DNA from: Zygnema circumcarinatum SAG 698-1b | Taxonomy: Eukaryota; Plantae; Zygnematophyceae | Direction: 5' to 3' | DNA length: 64,000 nucleotides | Assembly: GCA_037447605.1 (NCBI GenBank) | Contig: CM074821.1 | Coordinates: forward strand, 806,001-870,000 | Part shown: positions 2,114 through 59,074 of the stretch, piece after piece | Position numbering within the stretch: the first letter of the stretch is position 1 | How the letters are laid out: each line of letters begins with the position of its first letter | Notes under the pieces: generated by a model | The model's database searches: none | What the model was told of the DNA's origin: nothing | Seen by the model: the letters and a program-made list of their open reading frames with translations, nothing else | Program-made: the position numbers and the translations under genes

Positions 2114-3298
2114 GAAGGGCACGTGTGGCACTTCCCTACCTAAAATTATTTAGTACCTTCAAAACTTCCTAAGTCTTGTAACCATTCTTCGTCCAGAATT
2201 CTTTGAGCCATCAGGTCTCCTCAGGTGAGCCCGAGAGGGGGCTGTGCTTGTCAGCTGGCTCACTCCCATAGGTCACTCCTGATGGCTCCAATAGTCTAAT
2301 CCTCCCTATGGTGGGATGCAGCCTGTCATGCAATTCAGAGCTATCATCTCATCCCGTTTAGGATTAGTGCGAGTCATGCACATACAAAGTTAGGATGGAC
2401 TTTTGTGAACACTGTATAGATCGCGTTTCTTTCAAGGGAGGGAAGCTCTGACTATGGCGTATTTGATGGGGCCCTATCTGATGGCAGTGAGGTAACGGGC
2501 CCAGTTCTCAGTTCAGTCTGTGGCAAAGTTTAACAGAGCTTGCTCGTGAGGTCAATGCCACACCTTTTTCGAGCTTGCCCATATGTCAAAGGCATAAGCC
2601 GCAAATCAATTTGGAGAAAATCACTTGTCCCTGAGCCTCTCTCATGTGCGCGCCTCTCATATGCCAAGACAGGAGGGGGGGACGCCTCCATAGATGGAAT
2701 TCTGAACTCTGTAAATCAATTAATTGGGGCCTGTTACTTCGGTACAAAATTTAGCATCTTTCTTTTGCGTTTGTTTTTCAGTTCCATATCGCTATGAAGA
2801 AACTCGCTCTAACCGTTGGAGGTCTCTCTGCTGCTACTTGGGCAATAGTCGTTTTCGAAAATCCTGAAAATATCGTAGTATTGACGGCGTATCGGCTGTG
2901 TAGGCAGAGTTGCCGGCGTCGGGGTTGAAACTGGGCGGTCAATGGGAGTCTGGGAAGGACGGTAGCCGGCAGCGACGCCGCCACCTTCTGGCCGTCACTG
3001 CCAATGCGCCGGTGATATCGCGATATTTTGAGCCTTTTAATTTCCGCCCTGTTGCTCAATCGCCAAGAGGGCTGCCTCCAACTGCCTGAAAATTTGGGCA
3101 GTTGGTCGGTAGCCTCTGATTGGCTGCTCCGCCGCTGCTGTACGGCGCTTTTTTTTTCGGGCAGGTGGCTGCAGGAAAACTGAAAATTCCTGCAAAAAAA
3201 GCATCAAAAAAAGGATCAGAGTTTTTTAGTTCTCGCGAAAGTATCTACAATCCTGGGCATACAATTTGACCTCTGATGTGTTCTGCATAGAAATAATT

Positions 3299-4023
3299 CA
3301 CAGTTCGGACCAGTGGATCGGCAACCATTGGACAACCATTGGATGGCAATGGTTGGACGTCTACTGGTCGGCAACCAGTCGACTGGTTTGGAACCAGTGG
3401 ATGCCACTGGTTGGCAACCAGTCGACTGGTTCGGAACCAGTGGATGCCACTGGTTGGCAACCAGTCGAATGGTTGTTTCGATCCGGCGGCACTGGTTGGC
3501 AACCAGTCGACTGGTTGTGAACCAGTGGCATCCACTGGTTGGAAACCAGTCGAATGGTTGTTTCGATCCGGCAGCACTGGTTGGCAACCAGTCGAATGGT
3601 TATATCCATTAAATCAAATGGTTGGCAACCATTAAATTGTCGGTGTACGGAAAATATTTACAGTATATCGACAATACGGGGATCCGTACACCGACAATTT
3701 AATGGTTGCCAACCATTGGATCACTGGTTCCGAACCAGTCGAATGGTTGTTTCAGTCCTGCGCCACTGGTTCGCAACCAGTCGAATGGTTGTTTCGATCC
3801 GCAACCACTGGTTGCCAACCAGTCGAATGGTTTGGAACCAGTGGATGCCACTGGTTGGCAACCAGTCGAATGGTTGTTTCGATCCGGCGGCACTGGTTGG
3901 CAACCAGTCGAATGGTTGCCAACCAGTGGCATCCACTGGTTCCAAACCAGTCGAATGGTTGTTTCGGTCCGCAACCACTGGTTGCCAACCAGTCGACTGG
4001 TTTGTCTAATGGTCCGATCTGTG
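3299..4023. mobile_element. Non-autonomous foldback DNA transposon, short internally deleted copy
   Basis: Termini CACAGTTCGGACCA (3299) and TGGTCCGATCTGTG (4023). An 8-bp direct repeat AAATAATT lies at 3291-3298 and 4024-4031. Two inverted arms consist of CTGGTTnnnAACCAG palindrome arrays. The sequence matches the reverse complement of 55521-57529. Confidence 0.88.
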
Positions 4024-4071
4024 AAATAATTACATAGAAATAATTACAGGAGGATTAGCTTTAGTTAAAGT

Positions 4072-4134
4072 ATGGGCTAACTTACGTCAAAAAGGAGCCC
4101 ATTTTGAATCAGATTGCGGGCTTGAATTAGGGTT
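4072..4134 (+). promoter_or_regulatory. Site II (TGGGCY) motifs plus a telo-box-like motif upstream of the TMEM70-family gene
   Basis: TGGGCT at 4073-4078, AGCCCA at 4096-4101 and ATTAGGGTT at 4126-4134. This combination is known in plant promoters of mitochondrial and translation genes. Confidence 0.5.
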
Positions 4135-4515: not shown

Positions 4516-6059
4516 ATGCTGCAAAGTGCATTAAGTAGAGGCGTCCGCCGCGCTCTTGGGGCGTCAAAAAAATCTAATTTTATTTCTTCTCTTCAATCCC
4601 TATGCCCACATTTTGACCAAAGTGTTTCCATCTCTCCCCATGAAGAAGCATATGTTCACACAGTGCTGCAAAAACCAAGTGGTCTTTCCTTTACCTTTCA
4701 ACGATCCTCTGCTTTGCGGCCGGTACGTCTGCTAACCCTAATTTTACAAAAATCTTACTTATACTTAGTATTCATCCTAGAGAAAGCCAATTCTCCAACA
4801 AGCAGTTCAAGATTTTAGCTGGAATCTTGCTTGAATTTATCATTCGGTGCTCAAATTTAAACTTTTTCTCGACCCACTACTTTGATTAAGTGTAACATAA
4901 GAAGAGAATACATGTTTGCCCATATTCATAATCCGTTCTATTCCGTGTTGCTGGCGTTTTCTTCTTTTTTTTTCAGTTGTCGAAATCTTCTTCTTTTTCG
5001 ACGGTAGTTTGCTCAACTCAAGAAGCTTTACGTTTTCCTGGTGAGCCCCTGAAAAGCTGAATTATATAATTTTTTCGTACTCTTAGTCCAAATGCTTACT
5101 GACGCTATATTGCCATTGGGCCCTCATTTTTTTATTTAAGCTTGAGTTCGCTCTTTTCTCTAATCCTTCGCGGATCATTCTCACTTCAAAATCATTTTTT
5201 TTATGCTTTTGAAAAGTTTCTGTCCTTCTGCTTACGAACGATAGAAGTAATTCAACGGTAATGGGACGTTCCTTGGAGGATTCTCAAGATTAACTCCAAG
5301 TGCTCAAAGATACCCATGAACGATCATTGTATGGAAATCTCACGCATACATTTCCTCAAGGAGAGTATGTGCTGGTCGGACCCCTCCCAGCCCTCCTTCC
5401 CGCCACTCTCTGCCTCTCTGAACTCGTTCTCTTTGAACTTTTATGAATTCTTGGCAGGTTCAATTATCTCAATTCAAGACTGTGTCCTTCAGAATACATC
5501 ACATCCTCTCGGGGTTCCCTTTCGAGCATACAGAGGGGCTAAGGCACAGCCTTCACCTGTTGCACCTCAGACTTCACAGAAAGCCACTCCCCCACCTCCA
5601 GTAGTCTATCAAGGCGTCTTCTCCTCCACTCTCCGGAGTGTGAAGCTCCTCTCTCTCTCCACTTGTGCCCTCTCCCTCAGCATTGGCCCAATTGTCACTT
5701 TCTTCACTATAGCCCCCTCTGTAAACATCGTTGTCAAGGGCGCCATGGCCTCTATCATGGTCCTCTTGAGCGCATCCACAACTGCAGCCCTTCATTGGAT
5801 CAGTTCTGCTTATGTGCATAAGCTGACATGGACCCCTGGTTCTGATGAAGTTGAAGTTAAGGTCCTTTCTTGGATGACTACAACGGTGACGAGGAAAGTG
5901 AAGCTGTCGAGTGTGAGGCCTGCAGTGACAATGAAGCCTCTCGTCTCCTTTGAGGCAGATGGGAGCTTCTATTACATTGACAAGGACTCCTTCCCAGATA
6001 GGTGGTTATTGGAGCAGCTTACGCCGGAAGAGAAGGGAGTGAGCGGGAGTGAGAAATAG
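4516..6059 (+). CDS. TMEM70-family mitochondrial membrane protein (ATP synthase assembly factor-like), probably 2 exons
   Basis: The main exon (about 5458-6059) encodes YQGVFSSTLRSVKLLSLSTCALSLSIGP...STTAALHWISSAYVHKL...PLVSFEADGSFYYID, typical of TMEM70. An upstream ATG at 4516 gives a presequence-like MLQSALSRGVRRALGAS. The exon-1 donor was not resolved. Confidence 0.72.
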
Positions 6060-43352: not shown

Positions 43353-45374
43353 ATGGCTGCTCCCCCTCAGACCATAGCGCTGTTAGAAACGCTCGGGAGA
43401 GGGATATCCGGCGAGGTGCGGCGGTGCGTCCTCCCCGCGAGCGGGGAGGAAGCCGCCTGCAAGATCATCCTGAAGAATCGCCTGCAGAACCCCGCCGCCA
43501 TGGCCGCCCTCCGCACGGAGGTGGCGGCGCTAAGGGAGCTCCAGGCGCACCCCAACGTTGTGCACCTCTACGACGTCGCGGAAGACGCCAAGGTTGCAAA
43601 CAAACCCTGAAAACAAATCACCCTAAAAAATAAACTATCCCTCCTTCTCTCCTGAAAAACAAACCAATTCACATCCGACCCACCTTCAAATCCCCCCAAA
43701 TATTCCAACTTTTTCCGCTGTCTGTATCTATCTGACCCTCTCACCCATTGAATTGACCCACCCCCACTCCTCTTCGTTCCCCTCCCCCTCACCCTCCCCC
43801 TCCCCTCCCCCTCCCCCCCACCCTCCTCCTCCTCCTCCTACCCCTCCGTCTCCTCCTTCTCCCCCTCCCGCTCCTCCTCCCTCTCTCCCCCTCGCCCTCC
43901 CNNNNNNNNNNCTCCCCCACCTCCTCCTCCCCCACCTCGTCCTCCCCTCCTCCTCCTCCCCTCCCCCCTCATCCTCCTCCCCCTCCCTGTGCAGAGCGTG
44001 CAGGTGGTGATGGAGCTGTGCCGCGGCGGGGACCTCCTCGAGCGCGTGCGCGCTCGCGGGCCGTACGGAGAGGGCCCCGCGGCGCGCGTGTGTGCGGCGC
44101 TAGCGGACGCGCTCGCGGCCGCGCACGCGCAGGGGATCGCGCACCGCGACCTCAAGCCCGAGAACGTGCTCCTGCGCCCGCGCGCGCCCGCGGACGGGAA
44201 CCCTAAAAGGGAGGAGGAGGGGGAGGGGGAGGGGGAGGAGGTGCGCCTAGCGGACTTCGGGCACGCGGCCTTCGTGCGGCCGGGTGAGGGGGAGGGAGAG
44301 AGGGAGGGAGGGAGGGAGGGAGGGACCTGGGGGCGGATCAGATACGGGCGGGTCGGATACGGAGAATCTGAGGATAGCTTGTTGGTCTTCTGTGACTAGT
44401 TGACATTGGTCCTACACATTGCTTTTTTCCATGTACATTTCATGCTTGCCTCCCTACAACGAGACCAATGCCATTCCTTGTTGCCATTTTTTGTTGTTGT
44501 TGTTGTTGTTGTTCCATGTCATTGTTGCTCAATACGAACAATGTCTGTTTGTGCGCAGGCGAAAGGCTGACGGAGATCGTGGGCAGCACGTTCTACATCG
44601 CCCCGGAGGTCCTTTTGGGCAGCTACGGCTGCGATTGCGACACGTGGAGCCTGGGCGTGATCCTGTACATCCTTTTGAGCGGGCAGGACCCCTTCAGCGG
44701 CGGCTCCCTGCAGTGCACCTTCGAACGGATTTTGGGCGGAATCTACGACACGGAGACGGGGCCCTGGGAAGGGGTCTCCGCCGGGGCCGTCGATCTCGTG
44801 CGGAGGCTCCTCACCGTCGATCCCGAGCGGCGAATCAACGTCCGAGATGTCAAGAGTGAGTTTCTCGCGGGGTTTAGGGCATCATTTCGCTTTGGGTTCA
44901 GGGAGGGCTTCAAGATTTTCAAGAACTCAATTTTTTTGGGATTCAGGGTGGAGGGTTTTGCAAGGCCTTGCATGTGCTTGCATGTGCCGGCGGTAACGGT
45001 CGATTTTTTTGCGTTTTTGCGCTGCAGCCCACCCATGGATCGCAAAGCACTGCGGAACGCCGCAGCTGCCGAGGAGGCAGGCCCTTCCTCGCCGCCGGCG
45101 TTCCATGGACGACTATTCACACAGAGAACCAGCCACTCGTCGAGCGCTCACAGTTCCGTATTCTAACTGTACTGACATGGACATGGAGACGAGGCGACCG
45201 ATCAGCCCAACGACAGTTCTCCATGCGCAGCCTGCTCTGTCTCCTCCCTTCCCTGAATATCCGACCTGCATGCAAGTGCAAACCCGGCGGCATCATCCCG
45301 CCCCTCCCTCTGAACCCTGTCCCCCGCACCCTTCCCCGAGGACGAGGATCAACAAATACTTCTCCTGCGCTTGA
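43353..45374 (+). CDS. Ser/Thr kinase of the CDPK/SnRK superfamily lacking EF-hands (PEPC-kinase-related, PEPKR-like), 4 exons
   Basis: LGRGISGEV...AACK...HPNVVHL / VVMELCRGGDLL...HRDLKPENVLL...LADFG / IVGSTFYIAPEVL...DTWSLGVILYILLSG...WEGVSAGAVDLVRRLL / HPW followed by a disordered tail. All catalytic motifs are intact. The true start could be upstream, near the gap at 43122. Confidence 0.85.
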
Positions 45375-46229: not shown

Positions 46230-48129
46230 CTAGTCATTCCAATCCTTCAACTTTTTGCTGCCTTTGGGCTTTGCGATTGGTCGGTTCATTCCGGCCATCT
46301 TTGCGTTGTACTTAGCCCTCATATCATCGTTGTACGTCCACCTGCGAGGCAAGAGATGGAATCAGCAAAATTACCATCTCCCGGAACAAGCAGAAGATTC
46401 GGCAAGGGACGTTGCTAAGTGATGACATCAAACAAACAGTTTCCGTCAATTTTCTTCCATCGGTAAAAGGATCGGCAACTGAAGAGATTACTAAAAAACA
46501 TCCAGACAGACAGAGACAGTAAAACAGACAGACAAACAGACAGTAAAACTGGCGAAAAGTGGTACAACTACATGAGTTTCACTGCTGAGCGTAGATTTCA
46601 TTCCCAGTCATTCAATTCTTAAGATTTCCAAGTTCTACAGAGTTCCACGGCTCCAAGGTAAGTTCAAGCTTTAAGGAGTTTCCACTATTTTAAAGCTCAA
46701 TATTTTGCAGCGTTTAGGGTTCCCGGGTTCAGTCAAGATGTCAAAATCGACGGCGGCAAACTCAAAATATCTACACAACTTCCAGTTCACAGATAACAGA
46801 CCGCCGCAGACAAAGGGTGTGCATTCGGAACATGTCGAAGGTTTTATTGTTTTCAACCTGAAAGCATTGGGCCCTTTCCATGTTCAACAACATAAAAAGG
46901 AAAGGAGGGTAGAACGAGAGCACTCACGGGTTATCCCACTGCGTTGTGTCTTCGTTCACAAGATGAGTCCACTTAGTGCGTCCGGAGCGACCAAAATGTT
47001 TCACTTGCATCACTTTAGGAAGGTTTGTTTTATCCATTTTATCCTCCCCAGTAGGCGCCGAAAAATCTCGGTGATAAATCTCTCCACCGCCCGCAGTGCC
47101 TGCCGTATCATCCGGCTGGTCCTGGAAGAAAGCTCCCTTATGGAAATACTTCTGCATAAACTTCCACTTCTTCTTGGGAGCTACGCTCATTTGCTTAGGG
47201 TTCTTCCTCTCCCACTCTCTCCTCTCCTCCTCCGTCATGTTCCGCAGCTTCTCAAGCTCCTCCTTCTCCTTTACTGCCGTTTCCCTGTCCTCCTTATCCC
47301 TTCTAATTCTGGCTATCTCTCGTGCTTTCCATGTCTCATACTCCTCCGCTTCGTTCGCTTCGTCGTCAGTATCTACCTCCCCTCCGTCTCCCTCCTCCGC
47401 TCTCGCTTTCTCTATCTCCTCCTCCTTCCTAATCTCCTCTACTAAAATTTGCTTTGTCTCCGCCTTCCTCTCCTCCAGCTTCTGTTGTAGCATTCTCTCT
47501 CGCACCTGCTCCTCCTCCTCCAATTTCTTCCTCTCTGCCTCTATGTCACGCTCCGCCTTGGGAACAAACATGGGCCGCAGCATGGCAACTCCTCCCTCCT
47601 CATCCTCCTCGTCCGTCTCATACTCCGACTCCTCCTCCTCGTCCTCCTCCTCCTCTCCCTCCTCCTCTCCCACCCCCTCCTCCTCCTCCACCTCCCGCTG
47701 CCGCTGCAGCAGCTTCTCTCTGATCCTTCTCCTCCTCTCCTCGATCGCCTCGTCATCCTCCTCCCTCCTCTCCTCCTCCTCCCTCCTCCCCTCCTCCTCC
47801 CTCGCCTCCTCCTTCGTCGACACTATCTCCGCTGCCCTTATCTGTCTGTGCCGCGCTATCGCCTCCTCCCTGTCCCTCCTGCTCTCTGCCAACCGTTTCA
47901 GTCGAGCGTCGTCCCGTGGAACTATGCGTTCCATGCGCAGCTCTCCCTGCCCCCCGCCATGGCCTCCGCCCGCCTCCTCCCCCGCCGCCTCCTCCCTCTC
48001 CCGCGCTTCCTCCGCCCATTCCGGCGCCTTGCCCGGCCAGTAGCGCTTCACCTTCGTCTGTCCGATCTTCCCGCGCAGCTTGTCGCGCACGGTTATGGCG
48101 GCATCGCTCACTCCCGCGGCGACGGACAT
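46230..48129 (-). CDS. MFAP1: Microfibrillar-associated protein 1 (MFAP1; spliceosome B-complex factor), 2 exons
   Basis: [39 protein letters not shown]...[16 protein letters not shown]...[36 protein letters not shown] / [18 protein letters not shown]...KKLKDWND*. Exons are 48129-46928 and 46341-46230. Confidence 0.94.
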
Positions 48130-49475
48130 GGCGGCAGGGAGAGGGAGAGGGAGAGGGCGAGGGAGGGAGAGACGAAGAGGGAGAGAGGTAGAGGGAGGAG
48201 GAGACGGAGAGGGAGAGGGAGGAAGTAGTAGAGGCCAAGGGCACAAAATTAGGGTTGGGAATGGAGAAGGAACAAAGTCTGAAGGCGGAAAGTGGGCATG
48301 CTTGCGTCCACCCGATCCTGCCAGTACTGGATCAATGCCTACGTGGCAGTAGAATCAGATCAACTGTAGTTGATCACAGCTCGTCCAGATCTCCCCATCA
48401 AACACAAACGAATCTCCACTCATCCACGTCAGCAATCGGATCACGTATTTGTCGTCTTTTCAAGAATCCTCTAAAAAGACAAAAGCGCAGATGCGAAGAA
48501 TCTGAATTCGTACGGCAGGAGTCTCCTGGTAACCGCGAGTCCCCGAAAGTCCCCTACCGTCCTTGGACCGCCCGTCCGTCCGTCCGTCGTCCTTGTACAG
48601 GAAAGATCAGAGGGCAATGCCAATGGTTGGCAGCATGCGATGTGAATGGTGTTGTGGCACTGTAGTGGGGTCGGCGCTGGCGTCACTTTTCAAGTTCGAT
48701 GGATGCGATTCATTGTGAGTTGTTTAACAACAGAACGAGACACAGGCGATTGCTGTCCTGTGGGGCGTGTGATTGGCCCATGCCAGAAAGAAGCGGTTTC
48801 ATTCATGCCCAGCGGTTGTTGTTGTCAAGGCGGTCATGATGCATTGGACGACTCCCAGTGAGCTTCACAAGAGTCCTTCCCTAAGCTCTCAAGGATGCAT
48901 GTGAGCAAACAATCCATCCAGAATCACATAGTCCGAGTTCAAGCCGGTTAGGATCGGCGGCTTAGCTAGCCCCTCCTCAGTTGCAGGTACTTACCCGGCT
49001 CGGAACATTCCACAGTAAATCTCCATGGTCATATGATCATGAGTCCTCAAGATGAAAAATGGCATTGAATCACATGCATGCATGCATGTATCATGTGCAT
49101 AAAGGTGGCATAGGACCACAATGTCACTGCTTGAGCACACAACATAAGAAGCCGACCCAACATGGTTACGATATCTCCCATGATTAAATTGTACGTCCTC
49201 AGTTCCTTAGTATACAGACTGTACAGGAGCTCCTAACCAACAGCCCCCCCCCTCCCTCTCTCAAACGCAGCAAAACAACCCCCTTTCCAGCACTTAATCA
49301 ATCTCCTCTCAGACACAGAACATGCTTTATTTACAACAGAAGTCGCCGACCTGCCAGGCCTCCTCCCTCTGCCCCCCCTCCAGCTGCCCAAAAAAATACA
49401 GCTACCAGATGGGAAAAAATCGCCGGAGCCTCCTTCCGCCGTACACTCCATCACTACTGCACCGCAACAGCTGCT

Positions 49476-51416
49476 TTAAGACGAAGCAGCCAAAGGCTTA
49501 CCCCCTCCCACCGCCACCTCCATAGGGCCCTCTTTACGCACCCCCTTCCTGGAAGTTTCCAAAGGACCTGCAAGCTTGAGAAAGTCCGGCACTACTATTC
49601 TCTCTGCATCCACTCCCGATCTCAGAGCCTGCCTCCCTGCCTCCAAAAACTGCCTCGTTGCCTCTTCAACGAAGTTGCTCGCCTGCTTCACATTCATCTT
49701 CTGCGGCATCTGCCGGAGCAGATCGCTGTTCAGGGAGTCATCTCCTCTCTGCAGAGTCGCAGCCAACTGCACGAGCTCTGCCTGCCACTCACTCAGAGCT
49801 GCTTCTTCATTCGGAGGGCTATGGCGAAGGGACCATGGAGGCGAAGGAAGCTCATCTGAAAAATCGAAGAATAGAGTAAGAGAGCGGAGGAGAGAGATAC
49901 AGACTGTCAGGTCTGCACATGTCAACGGTTCTGCAATGAACATTTCATAGATTTGACATGTCATGAGTATGGACTCTGCTTACAAGGGCAGTCAGTGCGG
50001 GGGGAATCCCTCTCCATGAGAACATGCTCGAAGGTGCCGGCCCACTCATCGCGCTTTGTGAGGAAGTCAGACTTCAGATTAAATATCTTCTTCACTGTGG
50101 CTGGGACAGAGGAGTGCTCGTACGCGGACTGAGGTGTGGGACCCACAGCTTCGTGCACAACTGCAGAAAAAAAGGAACGGAAGGGAGAAAATTAGCCATC
50201 AGAGAACCGGCAACTTTGATCGATCTCGCTTAGAAATAAGTTGGGGATCAATCAATTAATATCTATTCCCCTCACCTGTTCCTTTGTTGATCCATGGCGA
50301 GATCATGATTGTCGGAACGCGTACTCCCAGCCGGTCAAACTCGAACAGCCATGGCTCCGGCCCTACAATGCCGTCGGGGCTCGGAACTCCGCGGACAGGT
50401 GTAGGAACGTGGTCGTAAAACCCGCCATGTTCATCATAGGTGATAATGAGCAGAGTTTCATTCCACTGAGGTGACATTCGAAGCGTCTCATACACCTCCT
50501 TCAACAGCTTCTGCCCCTCTGCAACATCGTGGCTCGGATGATCGTCGTTCGCCGGACTAACCTTCAAATCAAAGTACTTCGGTTCGAGAAAGGAATAATT
50601 CGGCAGCTTCCCCGCCCTTGCGTGCCGTCTGAACATATCCCACGAATGGAATTTGTCCGCAAATTTCACCTTCCGTAGTGACGACAGAAACAGAACCGAC
50701 GGCAGACTCTGGTGATAGACCCCCACACTGAACCCCTCGTCGTGCAGAGAATCGAAAATAGTTTTCTGCGGGAAGCCGCGAAGCAGGTCCGGAATGTGGT
50801 TCCCGGTAGCTCCATGCGATGTGGCGGAGTGCACATACATCCTGTTCGGCTGCGTGCTGGCGGGCATAGATGCATGCCACTTGTCAAACAAAGCAAACTC
50901 CATCGCCATAGCCGTATGCACCGGCACCACCTCCGGCCTGAACCCACTCATCACCCTCTCTGCAAACCCTTCCTCCGGCCTCATCCCCTCCGCCTGCTGC
51001 GCAAAGCCGTTCATGGGCGGAACTTCCTGCGCGAGAAGCTCCGGCGTTGCGCCGCCGAATACCTGCTCTCTGATGGCTTGGAAGGAGTGCCCGGGATCGG
51101 GGTCGACAAACTCCGCCGTGTCGGAGACGAAGAGAGGGCGCGCAGAGGGGTCGGAAGCGTTCAGGAGGTTGAACTCGGCGCCGGTGAGGCCGTCCACGTC
51201 CGGACGGAGGCGGCGGAGCCAACCGACCATGTGGTCGAAGGAGCGGTTCTCCATCATGAGGAGGACGACGGTCCGGATGCGCCCATGGAGGTCGGGATTG
51301 AGGGTTGGATCGAGGGAGGAGGTGGGACTGCAGAGGGAGAGGGGAAGGGAGGAGACGAGAAGGAGGAGGAGGGAGAGGGAGAGGGAGAGGCGCGAGAGGG
51401 AGAGAGAGGCAGCCAT
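49476..51416 (-). CDS. NPC: Non-specific phospholipase C (phosphoesterase family), signal peptide, 3 exons
   Basis: A signal peptide precedes [20 protein letters not shown]...[17 protein letters not shown]...[16 protein letters not shown]...[13 protein letters not shown]...[14 protein letters not shown]...[16 protein letters not shown] / [14 protein letters not shown] / a C-terminal NPC domain. Confidence 0.95.
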
Positions 51417-52307
51417 GGCCCTGGCGGTTTTCGAGCTTCGGACGCAAGGCATGGCAGAAGAAAGCCGGTAAGCTCCTTCCAAGTGGTAACGCGGAACCCT
51501 AAATTTGCCCTAACTGCTCACTATTATGGGTTATGGGCGCACAATGGGAAGCGAATGCCAATCGAAGGGTGTCACGTGGACGTGAATACTACGTGGCGTT
51601 CCCTGATTGGCCGTCATGGTAGATGGCTACTGTCAACGGATACCCATGGCCATGCCATGGAGGGCTTACGTGGAGGCATATGCTGCCACGTGTTACAACG
51701 GTGAGGCGCCACGTAAGAAACCGGGCGGGGCGAGCGCCGGTTCGTTTTTTTTTTTTTCCATTTTTGTTGGCGGGCAGACGCTTCCCAGGTTCGGGCAGGA
51801 AAAGAAGGGGTTGAGGACCACGTGGCGGCAGCAGAGGCGACTTTTTGAGATAAAAAAGATTTTTATTTGCCACGTGGACAGTCGAGGAAAGATTCGCACA
51901 TTGGGGCAGCGAATGTTCCCTGAAGCTGAATATGCCGCCAGGGGGGGCGGCGGGCGCGGGGAAGGGCGAGGTGTGCGCCGTCGGATCAACACAAAACGAA
52001 TCTGAACCGCAAGATGTGCCAGCTAGTTTGCTTAGTGAGGCTCTAGCCATTTGGAGGCTGCCACGTAGTAAACCGATCTTGACAGGATCCCCAGATGACC
52101 GCGTGGCGGAACAAGGTCCAGTCAGGGGAGGGCTTGTTCGTACAGTACGGGTATGAGCAGGTCAGACTTTACAAAATTAGACGGAAGATTATTTTTCAAT
52201 AATACTGACTGAATACTTTTTAGAAGTACTCCTTTTTAAAGTTATTGCAAATTCATCAAAGTACTCGTTTTTGTTAATCAATGACGGAGGTCATTTCTTC
52301 AGTATTA

Positions 52308-54974: not shown

Positions 54975-55115
54975 CCATCAAATTTACATGGATAAAGGCA
55001 AAATGTGGAACCACGAAGGACTGGTCACAAAGGACCGAAACACAATAAAACGAAGCTAGGAGCGGAAAACTACGCCTAGGCACAACAACGCAGCCCTAGA
55101 AGCAGCCGCGAAGGT
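54975..55115. repeat. Dispersed hairpin repeat family, copy 2
   Basis: GCCATCAAATTTACATGGA...GGAACCACGAAGGACTGGTCACAAAGGA and GCAGCCCTAGAAGCAGCCGCGAAGG are shared with 33725-33950. Confidence 0.62.
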
Positions 55116-55520
55116 CACCGATGTGAGGCACGTCGCGATAAAACTAATCAAAAATTTAGGTAGATTACAAATTAGAAGGCGACACGTGGCATGTTTGCTT
55201 GTCACTTCCTCTTGCCGTCTGGTCATGTTTAGGGCTGCGCCACGTCGGCGCCGCGTGGCAATATCCGTTGGCTCTGGAGTCGCCACGTGTCGCTCCTCCG
55301 GCTTTCGTCCGCTTTGGACCAACCGATCGAGCCAAAGCTGCGTACGGCATCTGCAGGGGTGTTCTATGGAGGGATTTGGTCCCGTTCAGCGTTGAACGTT
55401 GGGACGTCGTACCACATTCGTGACGTCATCCTCAGTAAATGACGCCAATACTGCCTGTAAGGTTTTCCGTACAGTAGCTTTTGTACAGTACAGTACAGTA
55501 CATTACGCGTAGCAGGATTT

Positions 55521-57529
55521 CACAGATCGGACCATTAGACAAACCAGTCGACTGGTTGGCAACCAGTGGTTGCGGACCGAAACAACCATTCGACTGGTTG
55601 CCAACCAGTGGATGCCACTGGTTCGCAACCAGTCGACTGGTTGCCAACCAGTGGCATCCACTGGTTCCAATTCAGTCGACTGGTTGCCAACCAGTGGTTG
55701 CGGACCGAAACAACCATTCGACTGGTTGCCAACCAGTGGATGCCACTGGTTGCCAACCAGTCGAATGGTTGCCAACCAGTGGCATCCACTGGTTCCAAAC
55801 CAGTCGACTGGTTGCCAACCAGTGGCATCCACTGGTTCCAAACCAGTCGACTGGTTGCCAACCAGTGGCATCCACTGGTTGGCAACTAGTCGACTGGTTG
55901 CGAACCAGTGGCGCAGGACTGAAACAACCATTCGACTGGTTCGGAACCAGTGATCAAATGGTTGGCAACCATTAAATTGTCGGTGTACGGATCCCCGTAT
56001 TGTCGATATACTGTAAATATTTTCCGTACGATTTTCCGGCAATTTTTCCGGCAATTTTTTAAAGGAAAATTCTATTCTCACACCTTTTTTGTCTACACAC
56101 AGACCTCTTTCGCAGGGCAGATTTTAAAATAGACCAAAAAGGAACACACCTTTCACACCTTTTTTTCTCACCTTTTTTTTCACACCGTTTTGGAATCGAT
56201 AGACGCTACTAGTCCTGAGCGGCCGGGCGCCGTGAGACCTTTTTCTGTCGGGCAGATTTTACTCATCATTTATTTTCAGGGAATAAAATATCTGCCTGCC
56301 CGAATCCGCTCGGAGCGGAAGATCCGTCCTCCACGAGATCGTTCGCGGATGGCCGTCCTTCACACGTGCAATAATTTTCCGCCGTCGATATTCACGCATA
56401 TCGCACCATGGCAGATCACCGTTCGATCAGCAGCCGGGCTCTGTCCCACGTGTCCCACCCAAGCCGGCTCCAAGGACCGTACAAAATGCGCACGCCCGCA
56501 GCTTCGAGGAAAGTCAAAAAACGTCATAATTAAGTTGAGTGCCTGCACCAATCACAGTTTGTCACGCCTACAACGAGCACGCGGCAGATGGTGATTGGTT
56601 CAAGCTCTCAATGCTAAGGAATTTAGACTTTCCTCGAAGCTTTCCGTACGAGTTGTGTACGGACCTCGAGCCGGCTCGGGTGGGACACGTGGGCGTGTGC
56701 CATTCGCTGGGACCGAGCCCAGCTGCCGATCGAACGGTGATCTGCCGTGGTGTGATCTGCGCTAGAATCGACGGTGTATAGATTCTGCACGTGTGAAGGA
56801 CGGCCACCCGCGAACGATCTCGTGGCGGACGGATCTTCTGCTCCGAGAGGATTCGGGCAGGCCGATATTTTTTCCTTTGAAAAAAACAAAAAGGGGTAAA
56901 ATCTGCCCGATGGAGAAAGGTGTGTATCGATTTCAAAAAGGTGTGGAAAAAAAGGTGAAAAAAAAGAAGGTGAGAAGGTGTGAAAGGTGTGTTCTTTTTT
57001 TGTGCTATTTTAAAATCTGCCCGGCGAAAAGAGGCCTGTGTGTAGACAAAAAAGGTGTGAGTATAGAATTTTCCTTTTTTAAAATTGCCGGAAAATCGTA
57101 CGGAAAATATTTATAGTATATCGACAATACGGGGATCCGTACACCGACAATTTAATGGTTGCCAACCATTTGATTTAATGGATATGACCATTCGACTGGT
57201 TGCCAACCAGTGCTGCCGGATCGAAACAACCATTCGACTGGTTGCCAACCAGTGCTGCCGGATCGAAACAACCATTCGACTGGTTGCCAACCAGTGGATG
57301 CCACTGGTTCACAACCAGTCGACTGGTTGCCAACCAGTGCCGCCGGATCGAAACAACCATTCGACTGGTTGCCGACCAGTAACCAGTCCACTGGTTGCCG
57401 ACCAAACTGGTTTGGAACCAGTGGATGCCACTGGTTGGCAACCAGTCGACTGGTTGCCGACCAGTAGACGTCCAACCATTGCCATCCAATGGTTGTCCAA
57501 TGGTTGCCGATCCAATGGTCTGACCTGTG
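55521..57529. mobile_element. Non-autonomous foldback DNA transposon, about 2.0 kb, almost entirely an imperfect palindrome
   Basis: Termini CACAGATCGGACCA (55521) and TGGTCTGACCTGTG (57529), with 8-bp TSD CAGGATTT at 55513-55520 and 57530-57537. Outer arms are palindrome arrays. Inner arms (about 55960-56555 vs 56591-57170) are inverted copies around a 35-nt loop (56556-56590). No transposase ORF. Confidence 0.9.
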
Positions 57530-57929
57530 CAGGATTTCCAAGCCGACAATGGCTTTTGGCGGCGGGCTTACGCCAATGCCATGCCATGCCATGGACAAAG
57601 CACCATGGGAAACCACGAGGAAACTGCCCACAACGCGTTTGAAGACAGGATTGCCACGAGGGCCCTTCAATCGCCGGGCCAATCCAAGTCCAACACGTAA
57701 GCAGATTGTCTGACGTGACGCGCTCTGACTGGTCCGACCTCACCCGCCCACTCTTGTACCAAGGCGGTGGCCGCCCGTCCACGTCATCCCACATGGCCCG
57801 CCGCCCCTCCCCGCGTGCGGCCAGTCAACGGTCAGTCAACGCGCACCGCGGCCCATCGACCAGATCTGCCACGCGGCGTGCTCTCCCCGCCTTCGGGCGC
57901 CGCGTCCCTCGCGGCGGCGCCTATGCGCG

Positions 57930-58077
57930 CCACGTGTTAGCCGCCGCCCTTTCCACCGAGCCACGTGGCCATCCCCCCCTCACCGACCCGCCCCGCTGGG
58001 CGCCGCGGCACGTGCGAGCCCCCTCCTTGTCCCGCGCGGAGCCTCCCCCCGAGACCCGGAGACTCGCACTATATAAA
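57930..58077 (+). promoter_or_regulatory. G-box-rich proximal promoter and TATA box of the secreted Cys-rich gene
   Basis: GCCACGTG at about 57930, GCCACGTGGC at 57960-57969, GCACGTGC at about 58008 and TATATAAA at 58070-58077. Confidence 0.6.
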
Positions 58078-58309: not shown

Positions 58310-59074
58310 ATGATGCAGTCTCCATGCTTCAGAGCTCCCAGCGTGCCCGCTCTGGCCCTTCTCCTTTTTTCTCTCCTCTCTCTCCCTTCCGCCTTCGCTG
58401 GCCGCTCTCTCCCTCTCCCTCTCCCTGCCGCTGCTACGGCCGCTGACCCCATCATCCCCGACAACGCCACCTGTCACCTCGCCCTGAGCCTGGAGTGGCT
58501 TCCGCCCTTCTGCAAGGAGGGGCCCACCGGCTGCCTCGTCACGCATCTCCCCGCCAACGCGAAGCAGCTCCTTCGTGGAAAGTGCGCTTCAGACTTCTCC
58601 AAAACGCCTCACTGCACTGTGGGCCCCTTCCGGTTCGCTGTGGGAGTGAAAGGGATCCCTCCGTACGGCCCTTCCACTTGTGAGAAGTGCTCCTGTCACC
58701 TCCAAGCTAACCCTAAAAATGCTTCAAACCCTAAAAAGGAGGCGGTTTGCGACTGCGATCCTCTTCCCCCATGCTACGTCTCGTTGGCCGGCGCTACTGT
58801 TGCGCCAGGGTGCCCCTACGGCATTCAGTCGAGATGTGTCATATTGAAACCCAATGCAGGCAAGAAAGTAGCTGGAAAAGCGACGCATTTGGGCACATGT
58901 CAGGCTCCTGAGGTGACAATGTGCGTCTCAGGGGGGCCAACTTGGGGCCCTTTCTGCTATGGGGTTGGAGCGGTAAATGTGCCGTTTCCCGGGAATCGGT
59001 GCCTTGCTTGTAAATGCGGAGAAGGAGGAGCCATTGAGAGTTGCGTCGCTGTTCCAGGGTGCAAGCAGCCCTGA
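58310..59074 (+). CDS. Secreted cysteine-rich protein (254 aa, intronless) made of two tandem repeats of about 100 aa
   Basis: The ACAATG start follows a TATA box. A hydrophobic signal (ALALLLFSLLSLPSAFAG) precedes a region with 21 Cys. The repeated motif is GPF-x-[FY]-x-VG...C-x2-C-x-C. No family was recognised with certainty. Confidence 0.8.
   Translation: MMQSPCFRAPSVPALALLLFSLLSLPSAFAGRSLPLPLPAAATAADPIIPDNATCHLALSLEWLPPFCKEGPTGCLVTHLPANAKQLLRGKCASDFSKTPHCTVGPFRFAVGVKGIPPYGPSTCEKCSCHLQANPKNASNPKKEAVCDCDPLPPCYVSLAGATVAPGCPYGIQSRCVILKPNAGKKVAGKATHLGTCQAPEVTMCVSGGPTWGPFCYGVGAVNVPFPGNRCLACKCGEGGAIESCVAVPGCKQP

Follow-up and report, generated by a model that had tools for sequence, protein, structure and literature searches.

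DNA transposons of the foldback type are familiar from flies and angiosperms. The classical foldback elements, FB of Drosophila and the plant elements FARE and SoFT, consist of long inverted arms that are built from short subrepeats and leave little or no non-palindromic centre; they are mostly non-coding and have a high hairpin potential, and FB and FARE are associated with direct subrepeats and with target-site duplications (TSDs) of 9 bp. The commonest source of elements with an 8-bp TSD is the hAT superfamily, whose terminal consensus is YARNG and in which a TSD of the form nTnnnnAn is typical of many members (Ac/Hermes type); the transposase of its autonomous copies has a BED finger, a DDE domain and a hAT dimerisation domain. 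TSDs of 8 bp are also made by the P element; P elements are rare in the green lineage. The termini of MULEs are usually G-rich at the start, and MULEs are characterised by TSDs of 9 bp and by long TIRs (100 bp or more).

Galileo, a member of the P superfamily in Drosophila, has a foldback-like look with internal arm repeats that vary in number, and many of its copies are two-arm deletion derivatives; its TSDs are 7 bp long, its TIRs are colinear over 0.6-1.2 kb, its tandem repeats measure ~210 bp and complete copies carry a P-type transposase (PMC3573991). Muta1, a MULE of Aedes aegypti, has a palindromic terminal motif followed by many subterminal repeats with short linkers, and TSDs of 8 or 9 bp; its repeats are direct 12-bp tandem repeats within a 145-bp, 97%-identical TIR, and the transposase is encoded by the element (PMC5499845). 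In experiments on Muta1, the subterminal repeats made the transposase bind more strongly and increased excision, and cleavage required them (PMC5499845). As for algae, the genome paper on a Zygnema-type alga names MITEs as the largest class of transposable elements, with the families not described (PMC11096116), and our literature search found no paper that links foldback elements to streptophyte algae.

Here, we describe an element of 2009 bp (positions 55521-57529) and a second one of 725 bp (3299-4023), which is inverted relative to the long copy, in a window that comprises the whole stretch of 64,000 nucleotides analysed. Very probably, both belong to a single abundant family of class II (cut-and-paste, TIR) transposons that is non-autonomous and has a foldback architecture. 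Long inverted arms of short subrepeats, the near absence of a non-palindromic centre, the lack of coding capacity and the hairpin potential are shared with FB, FARE and SoFT, but the 8-bp TSD, the palindromic nature of the subrepeats and the differing tips set the element apart from FB and FARE.

Ends and target-site duplications of the two copies

The features of the two copies are listed by position, with the strand and the observation on which each of them is based.

55513..55520, no strand: left TSD of the long copy, CAGGATTT; the identical 8-mer is found at 57530-57537
55521..55534, plus strand: 14-bp TIR of the A end, CACAGATCGGACCA; 12/14 against the other end, 14/14 against the A end of the short copy
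55521..55952, plus strand: left (A) arm, an array of 17-bp palindromes joined by CG, 7-nt or 25-nt linkers; Tandem Repeats Finder periods of 43, 86, 128 and 171 bp, half-site and linker counts
55953..56046, plus strand: inner arm, 99% complementary to 57081-57174; holds GTACGG (55985-55990), the left deletion breakpoint of the short form; inverted repeat, alignment
56047..56557, plus strand: non-coding left interior, which pairs with 56593-57080 at ~85-90% complementarity, indels included; inverted repeats, alignment
56558..56592, no strand: central hairpin loop of 35 nt; alignment of the halves, fold
56593..57174, minus strand: right interior and inner arm (57081-57174); holds GTACGG (57098-57103), where the deletion of the short form has its right breakpoint; inverted repeats, alignment
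57175..57529, minus strand: right (B) arm, a palindrome array whose outer ~70 bp have the variant half-site AACCATT; Tandem Repeats Finder periods of 42, 85 and 127 bp
57516..57529, minus strand: 14-bp TIR of the B end, CACAGGTCAGACCA on the minus strand; 14-mer search
57530..57537, no strand: right TSD of the long copy, CAGGATTT; abuts the CTGTG terminus
3291..3298, no strand: left TSD of the short copy, AAATAATT; abuts the CACAG terminus
3299..4023, minus strand: 725-bp internal-deletion copy whose left end is the B end; made up of the arms and a ~33-nt loop, without the 1.1-kb interior; arms 90-92% identical to the long copy
4024..4031, no strand: right TSD of the short copy, AAATAATT; same 8-mer as at 3291-3298

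Both copies are bounded by CACAG...CTGTG termini with the 8-mers of the TSD directly outside, the long copy starting with CACAGATCGGACCA at 55521 and finishing with the inverted TGGTCTGACCTGTG at 57529. The 14-bp TIR common to the long and the short copy is CACAGNTCGGACCA; at most one mismatch being allowed, this 14-mer has exactly four sites in the window, and these are the four ends of the copies. Within one copy, the two ends agree in 12-13 of the 14 positions. The two copies are inserted at unrelated sites; their TSDs differ (CAGGATTT and AAATAATT, respectively), and each is perfect and 8 bp long (n = 2 copies); an abutting match of two 8-mers has a chance of ~1.5e-5 per copy. When all 66 x 68 CACAG/CTGTG pairs of the 64-kb window were tested for an exact flanking 8-mer, only the pairs that delimit the two copies qualified. 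In the common orientation the TSDs read CAGGATTT and AATTATTT, both ending in ATTT. The original prediction had described two copies in opposite orientation with CACAG termini, each flanked by its own 8-bp TSD ending in ATTT, and all of this was reproduced. A TSD of 9 bp can be read in both copies, the base beside the TSD being equal to a terminal base of the element, but this is expected by chance in ~7/16 of copies and would render the termini asymmetric; this reading was rejected.

The true TIR is limited to ~14-16 bp. Further in, the A and the B end are different sequences (36/100 identical). A comparison between the copies gave 97/100 identical positions for the A ends and 94/100 for the B ends. 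The A end, which is on the left in the long copy and on the right in the short copy, leads directly into the AACCAGT palindromes, and the ~70 bp at the B end are based on AACCATT. Since the two ends are distinct and yet each is conserved between the copies, the element has a defined 5'/3' polarity as known from Ac/Ds or P, and is not a symmetric foldback.

Palindrome arrays and hairpin structure

The unit of the arms is the 17-bp palindrome A[C/A]TGGTTnnnAACCA[G/T]T. For the palindrome CTGGTTnnnAACCAG, 35 occurrences were counted in the window, compared to an expectation of 0.02, and every one is within the two copies; the same is true for all 42 occurrences of a relaxed palindrome core. Of these 42, 27 have GCC or GGC at the centre and, therefore, the palindrome is really of the form 8+1+8. 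In terms of half-sites, ACTGGTT and AACCAGT strictly alternate along the arms, with a spacer of 3 nt within the palindrome. If one mismatch at most is allowed, 68 half-sites are present in the long and 54 in the short copy, and exact half-sites are absent from the other 51.3 kb examined.

The palindromes are connected by linkers of three classes. The shortest has 2 nt, CG, and gives the TCGA join; the next has 7 nt, GGATGCC or the complement GGCATCC, both orientations being used; the longest, with 25 nt and the form ...CGGAyCGAAACAACCATTCG, ends in GAAACAACCATTCG and carries a degenerate half-site at its end. Tandem Repeats Finder reported a period of 42-43 bp, which corresponds to ~four turns of B-DNA, together with its multiples. 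As 17+25 = 42 and 17+2+17+7 = 43, each combination of linkers restores this period. Arrays of palindromes with three interchangeable linkers had been reported in the original prediction, and the classes are as described (CG; GGATGCC/GGCATCC; the 25-nt unit).

The two copies differ at 5.4% of the half-site positions, 5.7% of the linker positions and 25% of the positions in the centre triplets (Fisher p = 1e-5). Linkers are conserved to the same degree as half-sites, and thus conservation does not mark the half-sites as the selected part. Many of the changes in the centre triplet are C/G flips, which are equivalent to an inversion of the palindrome, and the 7-nt linker likewise occurs in both orientations; part of the signal in the centre triplets may therefore stem from module inversion or from an out-of-register alignment rather than from point mutation.

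When the right half of the long copy is reverse-complemented, the left half can be aligned to it over its full length, and a loop of only 35 nt remains. Complementarity varies along the hairpin, with 99% in a 94-nt segment (55953-56046 versus 57081-57174) and ~85-90%, with indels, in the 1.1-kb interior; the outer arrays have a lower complementarity and are out of register. Folded as single-stranded DNA, the long copy reached an MFE of -826.7 kcal/mol as compared to -280 +/- 8 for shuffled sequences, and 673 of the 846 pairs span the centre. The fold of the short copy had a value of -281.8 versus -117 for shuffles (z = -29). Alignment and DNA fold together reproduce the predicted near-complete, imperfect hairpin with its 35-nt loop. 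The interior of the long copy does not occur a second time elsewhere in the window.

Internal deletion, abundance and coding capacity

In the centre of the short copy, the equivalents of positions 55990 and 57104 of the long copy are joined at a 6-bp direct repeat, GTACGG, and the hairpin tip is gone. Between the two copies, the arms are 8-10% divergent and also differ in the number of modules. The short copy therefore derives from a related long element and not from the one at 55521-57529.

Contigs from three DNA samples (three studies) and from one sequencing run of unknown kind (X7) were compared with positions 55000-58000. The element stretch is present in DNA-type contig sets from several studies. 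Both junctions (55109-55545 and about 57491-58000) were covered with zero differences in all three DNA samples, from which it follows that the insertion is real and present in each of them. No empty-site joint was among the joints listed for the three DNA samples, and no insertion polymorphism was seen. The family had been proposed to be recently mobile; this is not borne out by a site that is filled in all three samples with no empty-site joint listed, nor by copies whose arms are 8-10% apart, nor by a long copy with many letters that depart from the family majority.

In the unique flanks, the depth was ~140, 54-73 and 18-25 in the three samples. Inside the element, the summed k-mer depth was 17,000-290,000, 2,300-96,000 and 800-34,000 in the same order. 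Overall, the k-mer depth of the element was 100-2000 times that of the unique flanks; by region, it was roughly 40-125-fold in the central loop region and >1000-fold at the tips. The summed depth of contigs is not a copy number, and the modules multi-map. The summed depth shows that the family is very abundant. At many interior positions, most family contigs carry a letter other than that of the long copy, which is thus some percent diverged from the family majority. In addition, many joints from the left to the right arm were found at single-copy depth and were identical across the three samples, skipping 1507, 1524, 1691 bp and other lengths; they are best read as further deletion derivatives elsewhere in the genome. 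In run X7 there was no depth on the right flank, and contigs covered the interior, one of them (132 bp, 56681-56812) without differences. This is compatible with low-level transcription; no listed run was recorded as RNA.

The element has no coding capacity. A search of seven of its ORFs against Pfam gave nothing above threshold, and no relative scored when the 156-aa ORF of the arm was compared with the protein collection. The arms are open in nearly all six reading frames because the modules contain no stop codons. A transposase was not found among the ten longest ORFs of the window, which belong to host genes (MFAP1, phosphoesterase, TMEM70, kinase) or to no family. In Rfam no family reached the threshold; the only matches were to miRNA models, at 23-43 bits versus gathering scores of 52-150, and such sub-threshold matches are generic hairpin matching that is expected of any perfect hairpin. 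Two palindromes joined by TCGA gave 0 matches in a pattern scan of public metagenomes. A looser pattern of two palindromes picked up two AT-rich contigs (L001 and L002) with just 2-3 units, which were discarded as unrelated. Distinct and perfect 8-bp TSDs, no coding capacity, a high k-mer depth and deletion derivatives in three DNA samples are the evidence for the multi-copy, non-autonomous TIR family that the original prediction had put forward.

Superfamily, transposition and significance

Among the superfamily options we tentatively favour a hAT-like element, a choice that falls just short of an even chance. Features that fit hAT are a TSD of 8 bp, a short TIR and subterminal regions that extend over several hundred bp, are asymmetric and are packed with a short motif in both orientations. 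Non-autonomous hAT elements (Ac/Ds-type, hAT MITEs) resemble the family in the 8-bp TSD, the short TIR, here of 14 bp, and the asymmetric, motif-crowded subterminal regions, and also in having internal-deletion derivatives that are joined at microhomology. What is unlike hAT is the terminus, since CACAG fits YARNG in 4/5 positions but not with the C at position 3, and the TSDs, both of which are nAnnnnTn (position 2 is A, position 7 is T), a pattern that weighs little with n = 2. No hAT transposase could be linked to the family, and strict 17-bp palindromes in a higher-order repeat of 42-43 bp, with the whole element a hairpin, are further differences from hAT.

Part of these observations could be taken to indicate a different superfamily that makes 8-bp TSDs, either a described one (Novosib or Zisupton/KDZ-like, for example) or an undescribed one, with a DNA-binding domain that would recognise the 17-bp palindrome in dimeric form. 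None of the standard consensuses tested matches the terminus or either of the TSD patterns, a partner transposase was not found, and neither was literature linking foldback elements with streptophyte algae; but this is purely an argument from absence. hAT is the commonest source of elements with an 8-bp TSD, and we regard this reading as rather unlikely. A MULE of the 'type 2 foldback' kind, like Muta1 or plant FARE, that is moved by a MULE transposase would account for a terminal motif with subterminal repeat arrays and for TSDs of 8 or 9 bp; the duplication is readable as 9 bp in both copies, though chance gives this in ~7/16. Against it, symmetric termini give a TSD of exactly 8 bp in both copies, a long near-identical TIR does not exist (A versus B 36/100 past the tip) and CACAG is not the G-rich start usual for MULEs. 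Moreover, palindromic repeat units, arms that lack colinearity and the absence of coding capacity distinguish the element from Muta1, and we consider a MULE origin unlikely.

The original prediction had considered the family to be possibly P/Galileo-like. On this reading, the arrays would be bound by a P-type transposase with a THAP domain, which would also make the 8-bp duplication. The TSDs of the P element itself do have 8 bp. Elements of the P superfamily can also carry long arms with internal repeats and secondary transposase-binding sites, as in Galileo. With Galileo the family shares the foldback-like look, internal arm repeats that differ in number from copy to copy and a wealth of two-arm deletion derivatives, but Galileo has TSDs of 7 bp (PMC3573991), in contrast to 8 bp here. 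In addition, its arms are long colinear TIRs, whereas the ends of the element described here diverge after about 16 bp, and no THAP or P transposase that could be linked with the family was found among the ten longest ORFs of the window or the seven ORFs of the element. The P/Galileo-like affinity did not withstand these comparisons and appears improbable. It is barely credible that the locus is no transposon at all but a dispersed satellite or palindromic array that was spread by recombination and is flanked by equal 8-mers by chance. The arms are indeed tandem arrays, and modules and 7-nt linkers are found in both orientations, as recombination among inverted repeats would give. But two independent, perfect 8-bp duplications are located exactly at the shared 14-bp termini, and the window has no other pairs of this kind. 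The A end and the B end are each preserved from copy to copy, and the flanks are unique with single-copy depth.

How such an element would move can be outlined. A transposase supplied in trans would recognise the 14-bp terminal repeat CACAGNTCGGACCA, and the subterminal arrays of AACCAGT half-sites, with their alternating orientation and their 42-43-bp repeat, would recruit many copies of the transposase, probably as dimers. By analogy to Muta1, it is reasonable to regard the arrays as putative multimerised transposase-binding sites. The enzyme would then cut at both ends and integrate the element across a staggered cut of 8 bp in the target, which would give rise to the 8-bp duplication; the distinct subterminal sequences of A and B would confer a polarity like that of Ac/Ds or P. 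A long form would give rise to a short one, like that at 3299-4023, when the hairpin tip is lost between two short direct repeats (GTACGG in this case), either via abortive gap repair or via replication slippage on the hairpin. We infer the binding of the arrays by a transposase and the mechanism of deletion, as well as the superfamily and mobility in trans, the latter two because neither an autonomous copy nor a transposase was found.

It is tempting to speculate on a transposase superfamily that is new to streptophytes (P, Novosib or Zisupton/KDZ-like), or even on a new lineage, with a DNA-binding domain that would dimerise on 17-bp palindromes placed every four turns, and in which the arrays and the G-box-bearing interior near genes would double as sources of hairpin RNA or small RNA or as cis-regulatory cargo; the chances for this are small. 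What we describe is a new family of a known kind, a foldback-type non-autonomous DNA transposon, and not a new principle. The family is abundant and located in gene-dense intergenic DNA. Foldback-type elements disrupt assemblies, promote deletions and inversions and can give rise to hairpin RNAs; they are hazards and tools at the same time, which is nothing unexpected for the field. The very regular grammar of the arms, with one 7-bp half-site, three linkers and a phasing of 42-43 bp, would make this family a clean system for the recruitment of transposase by subterminal arrays.

Genomic setting of the two copies

Both copies of the foldback transposon, the long copy (2009 bp, 55521-57529) and the short, internally deleted one (725 bp, 3299-4023), have host genes around them:
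5316-6056, + strand, TMEM70-family protein
44468-45163, + strand, kinase fragment
46927-48246, - strand, MFAP1 (E = 3e-70)
50259-51482, - strand, phosphoesterase-family protein (E = 2e-94)
Therefore, the two insertions are located in gene-dense DNA.

Removal of the short copy in silico rebuilds an empty site with a 14-bp tandem duplication, two copies of CATAGAAATAATTA that include the target-site duplication (3285-3298 and 4032-4045). Slippage at the target or a footprint of older date could account for this duplication.

To the left of the long copy, a second repeat, distinct from the foldback element, stops near 55138 (55000-55138 of the segment examined), where numerous loose contig ends are found. 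In the DNA sample X1 its summed contig depth was about 320,000, versus 140 on the unique flank; this repeat is even more common than the foldback family.

Terminal-like motifs in the arms

The 25-nt linkers of the arms (55566-55592, 55694-55720, 57211-57235 and others) have the layout CGGAyC, 5 nt, AACCATT-CG-ACTGGTT. This is similar to the tip of the A end without CACAG, which reads CGGACC, 7 nt, AACCAGT-CG-ACTGGTT, and thus the terminal motif may be repeated inside the arrays, where such copies would be possible pseudo-ends.

The half-site AACCAGT was also encountered in a metagenome contig retrieved by a loose two-palindrome pattern scan (Ga0307513_10032185), which is unrelated, AT-rich and eukaryote-like. 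There, a stretch of about 1.5 kb (2565-4089) has inverted repeats at both boundaries and three AGACTGGTTAATAACCAGTCT palindromes with this half-site in its subterminal region. These may be a coincidence or mark a distant analogue.

Interior of the long copy

Within the hairpin, 94 nt (55953-56046 versus 57081-57174) are 99% complementary, compared to about 85% in the adjoining interior; conversion, constraint and recent origin are candidate causes. In X7, a run of unknown kind, contigs were found on the interior (56341-56934), with zero depth on the right flank, and one of them (132 bp, 56681-56812) had no differences from the window. These contigs may reflect transcription of the long copy or a twin copy.

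The interior also carries four G-box/ABRE-like CACGTG cores, two in each hairpin half:
56363-56368, CACGTG core
56447-56452, CACGTG core
56686-56691, CACGTG core
56788-56793, CACGTG core
The left flank has additional CACGTG cores at 55183-55290, and the long copy is situated about 0.8 kb upstream of a Cys-rich ORF (58310-59074). The CACGTG cores of the long copy are possibly regulatory cargo.
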